Source of the DNA: Pocillopora damicornis
Taxonomy: Eukaryota
Assembly: GCF_003704095.1 (NCBI RefSeq)
Contig: NW_020846122.1
Location: 434,001-496,103, forward strand
Direction of reading: 5' to 3'
Length of the DNA stretch: 62,103 nucleotides
Shown here: in pieces, positions 59,187 to 60,344 of the stretch
How positions within the stretch are numbered: the stretch's first letter is position 1
Layout of the letters: the number at the start of each line of letters is the position of its first letter
Notes under the pieces: generated by a model
What the model was told of the DNA's origin: nothing
Seen by the model: only the letters and a program-made list of their open reading frames with translations
Database searches by the model: none
Translations under genes and position numbers: made by a program

Positions 59187-60344
59187 TCAGTTGTCACTGA
59201 CTACACCTACTTTGCCAAAGCTGAAAAGAATTTGAGGGCTGGGATTCTCCGGATACTTATCTTCAACTAAAGTTACATTGCCATCTTGGTCGCATGCCAA
59301 GTAGAGTTTGCTACCATAGAGTTTTATCATCGAGAAGATCCCTCCCTCGATGGATATAACCTTAAAAATGTCGCTCTCGTCATGAATATTTTCCTTAACC
59401 TTAAAAATTGAAGGCAGATTTGAATTAAAATTAATACCAACCTATGGAAATTATATTGTAGTCTCCCACTACAAGAACTGTAAAGGTATTGTATGATTCA
59501 CCTCAATGTTGGATAGTCCAACTTTCCAATCGATTGTTTAGGAGCCTTTTGACTTGGAAAATAATTTATCATGTGCCTCTGCTGCTTCAGAAATAAATCT
59601 AATGAATACTTATGTAATGAGATCAAGACATGGAGGAAAAGAAAAACTAAAGAATGTCGGAAAGAGCCAACAAACAAGTGAATAAACAAACGAATAAATC
59701 AATGGATTACGAGGTGAACGGGTCGGTGAATAAATAAAGGAGGTAAGTTTCTAAAGAGCCTGTGGTGCTGCGTCGGTGAGAGAGTATAACTGGTGATTTA
59801 ATGTTAACAACTTCGTTGAAAACGTAAATTGGCAACCGTAAAGAGTTTAAAGGCTGACGTTTCGAGCGTTACCCCTTCGTCAGAGCGATTGGAGGAATTG
59901 TGGGTTGTGTGTAAGTTTATATGCAGAAAAGGGAGCAACGCCATTGGTGGGAATATGGTGACGAGAAAACAAGAATAAATTAGTTGAATGAAAAGCGCTC
60001 GTTGATACCGTGGGGATTAAGGGTGCCGATTTGGAAGATAAAGTTTTGGTCATATGTTTTGCGGCTTTCCAAACTGTCTAGATGTGGGGAAAGGGCCGCA
60101 AACTGCCATATGCTGTTTAGAATGATAAGGGATATTAAATTAGGGTGAATAAGTAGATAGATGACTCATTGAACAAATGGACTAATTAGCATTAGATCAG
60201 AAAATGATGTTTTTCGTACTTCGGTTGTGATTGTTCTTCGTTCTTTATTTCCTTTCAATGCGTATTGTTCTCCTGCGTGGTTGAATACGAAGGCAAAACA
60301 CTTGAGGCAGTTTATCGCCGTCTTATCGCTGGTTGTCCAATAAA
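59187..60344 (-). CDS. Candidate IL-1-family-like/FGF-like beta-trefoil protein, last two exons (5' exons unresolved)
   Basis: Exon 60344-60220 (pyrimidine tract..CATAG|, phase 1; donor GAA|GTACGA, phase 0) joins exon 59399-59187 (TTTTTAAG|, ends TGA) with no internal stops: YWTTSDKTAINCLKCFAFVFNHAGEQYALKGNKERRTITTE|VKENIHDESDIFKVISIEGGIFSMIKLYGSKLYLACDQDGNVTLVEDKYPENPSPQILFSFGKVGVVSDN. Confidence 0.6.
59735..60140 (-). mobile_element. 3' end of a Penelope-like retroelement (GIY-YIG C-terminus, 3' UTR and hammerhead)
   Basis: The reverse strand encodes FNIPYHSKQHMAVCG..IFQIGTLNPHGINERFSFN-stop, a typical PLE endonuclease tail. It is followed by the hammerhead motif at 59886-59853 and the shared tail. 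Confidence 0.85.
59853..59886 (-). ncRNA. Minimal type I hammerhead ribozyme motif (PLE family A)
   Basis: GCT-CTGACGA-AGGGG-TAAC-GCTC-GAAACGTC-AGC: intact CUGANGA and GAAA cores, ACGT palindromic stem III, GUC site; one mismatch in stem II. Confidence 0.75.

Follow-up and report, generated by a model that had tools for sequence, protein, structure and literature searches.

A transcribed beta-trefoil gene at the end of a Pocillopora damicornis scaffold and its stony-coral family, compared with FGF, lectin and IL-1 trefoils

The 62,103-nt stretch of Pocillopora damicornis DNA analysed here (contig NW_020846122.1, positions 434,001 to 496,103, in our numbering G000:C2757:434001-496103; hereafter the window) holds the 3' three-quarters of a four-exon gene, pdam_00008674, which is intact and transcribed and has a product of about 172 aa. 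We read the protein as a real, lineage-specific and probably cytoplasmic beta-trefoil; its family is uncharacterised, has no Pfam model and turned up here in stony corals only. An earlier note on this DNA had read two minus-strand exons of the gene as an unannotated, deeply diverged member of the interleukin-1 (IL-1) family of cytokines. The exons, their splicing and the trefoil fold have held up; membership of the IL-1 family is unproven and unlikely.

Structure and expression of the gene

A HMMER scan of the last exon against 1.84 billion representative proteins returned a 156-aa protein (P0001), 100% identical, which is RMX41554.1, 'hypothetical protein pdam_00008674, partial [Pocillopora damicornis]', from a 496,103-bp contig. 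The word 'unannotated' was therefore right only for the track of open reading frames (ORFs), from which the gene is missing. A literature search for the locus tags found nothing.

All features of the gene are on the minus strand. The scaffold end coincides exactly with window position 62103, 23 nt upstream of exon 62080-61948, and the first coding exon is absent from the contig; what precedes exon 62080-61948 is the 3' end of the upstream intron (62081..62103), with its polypyrimidine tract and AG, at which the contig terminates. Trefoil exon a (61948..62080) runs from an acceptor tttag before GTG (phase 0 at 62081-62082) to a donor A before gtacgt (phase 1), as read from the sequence and its translation, and encodes residues 1-44 of P0001 (VNPIQVNTTYQIW...NTGEN, plus the first base of an Ile codon; strands b1-b3). 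Beyond intron 1 of the trefoil region (60345..61947, phase 1, GT..AG) follows trefoil exon b (60220..60344; (I)YWTTSDK...RTITTE; residues 45-86 of P0001; strands b4-b7), which begins, after the acceptor ...aacatag, with two bases completing a codon (phase 1) and ends in ...ACC GAA before gtacga (phase 0). Intron 2 (59400..60219, phase 0, GT..AG) leads to the last coding exon (59187..59399; VKENIHDESDIFKV...GKVGVVSDN; strands b8-b12), with an acceptor ...ttttaag ahead of GTT AAG GAA (phase 0) and the stop TGA at 59189-59187. Joined through these canonical signals, exons 60344-60220 and 59399-59187 give 41 + 70 residues, in frame and stop-free, which reproduces the spliced peptide with the motifs first quoted for it and is the product deposited as P0001. 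In the AlphaFold2 model of P0001, intron 1 interrupts the b3-b4 loop, just ahead of strand 4 (residue 44/45), and intron 2 lies at the end of strand 7 (residue 86/87).

The RNA evidence consists of RNA-seq contigs from public coral libraries (runs X1, X2, X11 and X12, from four studies) and, being contig-based, speaks to presence and splicing only. The 1603 nt of intron 1 are skipped by an RNA joint in all four runs (junction 60344/61948, GT..AG), and the 820 nt of intron 2 in three of them, X1, X2 and X12 (junction 59399/60220, GT..AG); the latter is the junction across which the earlier note had proposed to look for reads, and both joints back its intron phases of 1 then 0, as read from the splice sites. 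A 620-nt RNA contig (X12 record 17) covers all three exons, and RNA contigs continue unbroken from the last exon to 59031 and onward to 58900, the edge of the stretch examined, giving a 3' untranslated region that covers at least 58900..59186. Exons have a word depth of about 250-700 (poly-A libraries) and introns, repeats aside, one of 0-60, with 0-40 in intron 1 except at the repeat 61575-61895. The piece at 61115-61180, once suggested as a possible upstream part of the coding sequence, has an RNA depth of 0-27 against 250-700 on the exons, shows no junction and is intronic. The 5' exons that the earlier note had proposed to look for are exon 62080-61948, inside the window, and the first coding exon, off the scaffold.

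That first exon can be glimpsed in the RNA. A contig in X2 extends 118 nt past 62082, its visible part reads in frame ...LGRNRVGNTE up to VNPIQ, and the extension matches the first exon of Pocillopora verrucosa, MSCFGRRQNGNRVGNAE. The P. verrucosa RefSeq orthologues, XP_066016828.1 (173 aa) and XP_066016829.1 (172 aa), start with MSCFGRRQNGNRVGNAE followed by VNPIQ..., and three residues differ among the 156 shared with P0001. Their N-terminus is a 17-aa basic leader (MSCFGRR...) ahead of the trefoil domain, without a hydrophobic signal, and no signal peptide is visible in any family N-terminus inspected. The first exon was also sought on the small P. damicornis contigs C2472 and C4216, where the relevant stretches are runs of N. 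Judged from a dN/dS of 0.51 against Stylophora (0.38 in the last exon), the gene is constrained yet fast-evolving; the coding changes against P. verrucosa, three non-synonymous and no synonymous, are too few to interpret.

A stony-coral family with interchangeable N-terminal modules

Two iterated profile searches over 5.8 billion proteins brought together about 65 relatives, the homologues that the earlier note had left to be sought, and all the named ones are scleractinian. They come from Pocillopora damicornis, P. verrucosa and P. meandrina, Stylophora pistillata, Oculina patagonica, Desmophyllum pertusum, Porites lutea and Porites lobata, and none of the roughly 65 carries a precomputed Pfam domain or a functional name. 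Full-length members (250-332 aa) open with a domain of about 85 aa, which a variable linker joins to the common C-terminal domain. AlphaFold2 models this N-domain of the Stylophora relative as a beta-grasp, and structures of SUMO, ubiquitin and ubiquitin-like (UBL) proteins match it with a template-modelling (TM) score by target of about 0.7. Such a ubiquitin-like domain and linker precede the trefoil in most family members, while the P. damicornis gene has a short leader instead. The model of the full-length Stylophora relative, built from 8 sequences, was mediocre (predicted local distance difference test, pLDDT, 66.8), and the ubiquitin-like domain dominated its fold search.

Two known kinds of protein recall parts of this design. 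The plant DUF569/Ubiq_DUF_assoc proteins (PF04601 + PF22932) also combine a fascin-like trefoil with a ubiquitin-like domain, and they form the nearest clusters of the full-length Stylophora relative in the ESM Atlas (0.87), which we take as a lead only. In the plant proteins the domain order is the opposite, with the trefoil first; neither PF04601 nor PF22932 gave a hit in the family members, and their genome scans were blank. The trefoil-only paralogue P0029, which is transcript-derived, begins MGCGSS, a start that fits the consensus for N-myristoylation and palmitoylation and hints that some family members may be tethered to membranes; hisactophilin, a trefoil that is N-myristoylated, offers a parallel.

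Diverged copies of the last exon are also present elsewhere in the P. damicornis genome, on contigs C1789, C3266, C548, C2480 and C4282 (E down to 9e-10), and some of these paralogous last exons carry in-frame stops. At the Stylophora pistillata locus LSMT01000238.1 (10001-15950 of our extract L009), NCBI's P0002 model links a UBL exon (10001 to about 10279) to trefoil exons at about 12962, 14170 and 15735; it leaves out exon 10812-11033, which together with the same UBL exon starts the transcript-derived P0014. A further transcript protein, P0013, has a different UBL domain, and its trefoil is 97% identical to that of P0002 in the last exon and 91% and 76% identical in the other two exons. 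The three proteins point to either a chimeric gene model or an alternative use of tandem trefoil cassettes.

What remains of interest is a fast-evolving family, found in stony corals only, with no Pfam model and several copies per genome, in which one kind of trefoil follows interchangeable modules at the N-terminus, be it a ubiquitin-like domain, a motif for acylation or a short leader. It is a candidate for coral-specific stress or immune biology, for which the case is not yet strong.

Relation to FGF, IL-1 and lectin trefoils

The AlphaFold2 model of P0001, built from a 24-sequence alignment, is confident (pLDDT 88.2, predicted TM score 0.84) and has twelve strands. Foldseek against the PDB gave 224 hits at E<=1e-3, every one a beta-trefoil (TM by query 0.63-0.75), among them Symfoil designs, botulinum HA33, the BEL lectin, FGF1, FGF12, FGF8 and IL-18. 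In an exhaustive VIA-align pass over 48,161 representatives the highest scores went to the ricin-type HA33 (19.6 and 19.3) and a designed, FGF1-derived Symfoil variant (19.1), followed by the MTX lectin domain (18.1), MOA (17.9), FGF18 (17.4), FGF8 (17.1), fascin (17.0), FGF10 (16.8), and FGF12 and FGF4 (both 16.7); IL-33, with 16.1 at rank 29, was the sole IL-1 member within the top 50. The Z differences among trefoil families amount to 2-3 units and are in part an effect of aligned length. In the ESM Atlas the clusters nearest to the orthologue are fungal ricin-B-like lectins, clitocypin (I48), CCL2-like proteins and I66 inhibitors (0.90-0.92), with fascin, FRG1 and FGF clusters next (0.89) and no IL-1 cluster among the neighbours listed; the shared-feature counts, 114-147, are under the level typical of same-family hits. 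Sequence searches of the PDB with the exon and with the family profile gave noise only. The proposed fold comparison with IL-1, FGF, fascin and ricin-B proteins thus bore out the trefoil, with IL-1 structures ranking below the lectin, FGF and fascin trefoils, so that the predicted fold, which many families share, gives IL-1 no special place and speaks slightly against it. The IL-1 resemblance of the sequence is the generic appearance of the third unit of any beta-trefoil.

The gene structure agrees with that of FGF genes. Scanning the genome with the Pfam FGF model (PF00167) gave 60 exon matches in the usual three exons (model positions of about 1-33, 33-68 and 68-124), and the scan does not detect the window locus. 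In the FGF genes on C3469, C37 and C211 the exon with strand 4 is preceded by a phase-1 intron and the C-x-F-x-E exon by one of phase 0, which are the trefoil intron phases of the window gene, 1 then 0; the intron positions match as well, within a trefoil of three exons in either case. From this genome, 20 last and 20 middle exons of FGF genes were translated, each by itself, and compared by hhalign with the matching family exon blocks. The last exon met FGF exon 3 in register (D-x-S/C-x-F ... LYLGCDxxG / WYLALxKxG) with a score of 21.8 (P 4.6e-4), which none of 120 column-shuffled controls reached (mean 8.6, maximum 18.0; reversed alignment 9.9), while the remaining exon pairings gave P values of 0.08-0.33 and the middle exons no signal (P 0.33). 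This sequence-profile link is suggestive and not proof; the exon layout ties the family to the FGF/IL-1 'cytokine-type' trefoils in general. The FGFs, especially the intracellular FGF-homologous factors FGF11-14, resemble the window gene in having a single beta-trefoil of about 150 aa from three trefoil exons with the same intron phases and positions, in addition to that weak in-register match of the last exon. They differ in that the signature G-x-L-x-S ... C-x-F-x-E ... Y is absent from the window gene and in the ubiquitin-like N-domain of the coral relatives, which is not known from any FGF. P0029 gave 14.6 bits against PF00167 (cut-off 24), one trefoil unit out of register, a match that was rejected. 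The FGF repertoire of the genome is large and partly tandem, with several genes per contig (C3469, C1935, C3095, C2788 and C37).

A comparison with IL-1 can lean on the invertebrate 'IL-1anc' genes described in 2026 (PMC13736523). They are reported across Eumetazoa, with a single gene in Nematostella, and have a PDZ domain at the N-terminus and, at the C-terminus, a trefoil in which the strand-9 motif (F/L)ES is largely conserved, though some of the proteins are without the PDZ domain or have another pro-domain; the two central trefoil introns keep their phasing across IL-1 genes, in a text that states no phase numbers, and the cnidarian genes have TRAF3, GCC2, SOX3, a GAP, ESD and IL-1R-like genes as neighbours (PMC13736523). 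The Pfam IL1 model (PF00340) matched neither the exons nor P0001, P0064 or 24 relatives at E<=10, and its whole-genome scan was blank, a result to be weighed with the reported failure of sequence searches for IL-1 outside vertebrates (PMC13736523). In strand 9 of the window protein (residues 108-113, FSMIKL; family consensus YTMF) the (F/L)ES motif is absent, and the F-E-P motif of the family, FKV in the window gene, is located in strand 8. Pfam finds no PDZ domain, the N-terminus being the 17-aa leader or, in paralogues, the ubiquitin-like domain, and not an IL-1 propeptide. The earlier note had likened the phases of 1 then 0 to those of vertebrate IL1B, which we take to be stated correctly for the human gene; three FGF genes of this genome have introns at these positions and in these phases, so intron phasing does not separate IL-1 from FGF and is not specific to IL-1. 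No hallmark of IL-1 was found apart from the fold and, as far as reported, the intron phasing.

Among the explanations we weighed, an intracellular binding or adaptor trefoil is the most likely, and we would give it about an even chance. The family would then either have branched off from the FGF/IL-1 'cytokine-type' trefoils or have converged on them, and the protein would act inside the cell as FGF-homologous factors, hisactophilin or fascin do, with its N-terminal modules (ubiquitin-like domain, acylation motif, basic leader) setting partners or location. Action inside the cell is suggested because there is no signal peptide and because modules such as UBL domains and acylation motifs are typical of cytoplasmic proteins; FGF-homologous factors, too, are leaderless and act inside cells. 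Several points weigh against it. Lack of a leader is not the same as an intracellular life, as IL-1 and FGF1/2 are leaderless yet secreted; PF00167 gives no hit with P0001 or P0064, and the FGF profile similarity is weak, with an HH probability of 33%; the first exon of the P. damicornis gene is unassembled; and among the neighbours by structure and by protein language model there is a slight tilt towards ricin-type and fungal lectin or inhibitor trefoils. Perhaps half that credence goes to a second reading, a cytoplasmic defence trefoil that resembles a lectin or a protease inhibitor, on the pattern of fungal ricin-B-like lectins, clitocypins and cospins, and whose targets would be glycans or enzymes from microbes, symbionts or predators. 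Such trefoils are the nearest named clusters in the ESM Atlas (0.90-0.92), and ricin-B-type and fungal trefoils such as HA33, MOA, CNL, clitocypin and cospin are structurally very similar, small and often lineage-specifically expanded; the fungal lectins and inhibitors are leaderless as well, and a lineage-specific expansion with pseudogenised copies, as seen here, is common among defence genes. Yet the Pfam models for ricin (PF00652, PF14200), CCL2, I48 and I66 gave no hit at E<=10, and the (QxW)3 sugar-site motif is absent, the single Q-x-W (Q-I-W in strand 1) being unconserved and mostly R-L-W in relatives. The gaps in Z of just 2-3 units, partly due to aligned length, and shared-feature counts too low for typical same-family hits speak against this reading too, and the FGF-type intron layout and ubiquitin-like fusions, a different gene structure and domain company, are not known for such lectins.

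A true IL-1-superfamily cytokine, as a PDZ-less or domain-swapped relative of IL-1anc that leaves the cell by unconventional secretion or pyroptosis, with the ubiquitin-like domain as a cleavable pro-domain in paralogues, strikes us as improbable. The coral proteins and IL-1 are both leaderless beta-trefoils with conserved-phase introns within the trefoil, most coral members have an extra N-terminal domain and linker, IL-18 and IL-33 appear among the structural hits, and fast evolution (omega 0.51) is typical of cytokines; conserved IL-1 phasing, and IL-1anc proteins with no PDZ or with another pro-domain, have been reported (PMC13736523). Against this stand the Pfam IL1 model without a hit anywhere, a strand 9 without (F/L)ES, a ubiquitin-like domain or 17-aa leader where IL-1anc has its PDZ, and a distribution confined to Scleractinia where IL-1anc extends across Eumetazoa (PMC13736523). 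None of TRAF3, GCC2, SOX3, ESD or IL-1R is seen among ORFs of at least 110 aa in 59 kb of the window, with the upstream side of the gene off the scaffold, or within 10 kb of the P. verrucosa orthologue, IL-1 structures rank under lectin, FGF and fascin trefoils, FGF genes have the same intron pattern, and the protein-language-model neighbours include no IL-1 family. A broader version is a similarly long shot: the stony-coral family may be a second, unrecognised lineage of leaderless FGF/IL-1-type signalling trefoils in which an ancestral PDZ pro-domain was swapped for the ubiquitin-like domain, or lost in Pocillopora, and whose mature trefoil would escape when cells are damaged or undergo pyroptosis and then work as an alarmin or cytokine of corals. 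How IL-1-type cytokines arose outside vertebrates has begun to be addressed only lately (IL-1anc, 2026), and another coral IL-1 would be notable. Least credible of all is a decaying or non-functional duplicate, whether the recent pseudogene suspected in the earlier note or a transcribed relic. Several paralogous last exons do carry in-frame stops, all three coding differences from P. verrucosa are non-synonymous and the 5' end is unassembled. The window gene itself has three open exons free of stops, its splice sites are canonical, and several studies yielded spliced poly-A RNA that is far deeper on the exons than in the introns; it also has an intact and full-length P. verrucosa RefSeq orthologue, an omega of 0.51 over the Pocillopora-Stylophora distance (last exon 0.38) and a confident predicted fold. 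Together with the fast evolution and the interchangeable modules of the family, the exon-intron layout common to the family and FGF genes, and reportedly to IL-1 genes, provides a handle on how cytokine-type trefoils diversify.

Genomic neighbourhood and further observations

On the minus strand of the window, a galactose-3-O-sulfotransferase-like frame lies at 52305-52919. A sulfotransferase is found downstream of the orthologue in P. verrucosa too (L032:31335-33789), so local synteny is conserved, and there the orthologue lies directly downstream of a UBL-trefoil paralogue. Within 10 kb on either side of the P. verrucosa locus we found family genes and the sulfotransferase only. Further minus-strand frames of the window are a LicD-family frame (7919-8827, E 2.5e-22), an NLR-type innate-immune gene (20347-22479) with a 710-aa frame of many LRR_6 repeats (E 2e-51) plus NLRC4_HD2, and, neighbouring the NLR-type frame, the frames of an F-box plus leucine-rich-repeat protein (41266-43628). 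The absence of TRAF3, GCC2, SOX3, ESD and IL-1R neighbours from 59 kb of the window refers to ORFs of at least 110 aa, with the upstream side off the scaffold.

In P. verrucosa (CM071759.1, 10001-26567 of our extract L032) the first exon MSCFGRR... occurs twice, at 10001 and 22542, with an orphan copy of trefoil exon a behind it in each case (10305-10412 and 22843-22950), and a complete UBL-trefoil gene lies between the two (12474-16290). The duplicated exons indicate a recent segmental duplication in the cluster.

Some database matches of the family are spurious. The conserved block LYLGCDxTGKTTLVEN (alignment A2/A3, strands 10-11) draws weak hits to the P-loop region of Pfam Arf in four members and is a trap for automated annotation. 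Beyond these and the out-of-register FGF match of P0029, Pfam gave nothing with the exons, the deposited protein and at least 24 relatives. The bacterial repeat proteins P0003-P0007, P0009, P0011 and P0012, retrieved with the last exon in the all-library HMMER scan, match over several stretches through a reiterated D-K-D-G-N-I-T-V-V-D and were discarded.

Both introns of the window gene contain repeats, and Rfam found no match in either intron, the intron 2 repeat included. Intron 2 carries an interspersed high-copy repeat of about 358 bp (window about 59740-60100) for which a first look at the genome gave more than 2,600 candidates, 86-90% identical, and it is because of this repeat that RNA word depth reaches 8,000-10,000 inside the intron. 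The repetitive stretch in intron 1 (61575-61895) includes a plus-strand ORF of reiterated LRLTVK type at 61598-61852 and shows moderate RNA depth, with many rearranged joints and loose ends in the RNA contigs.

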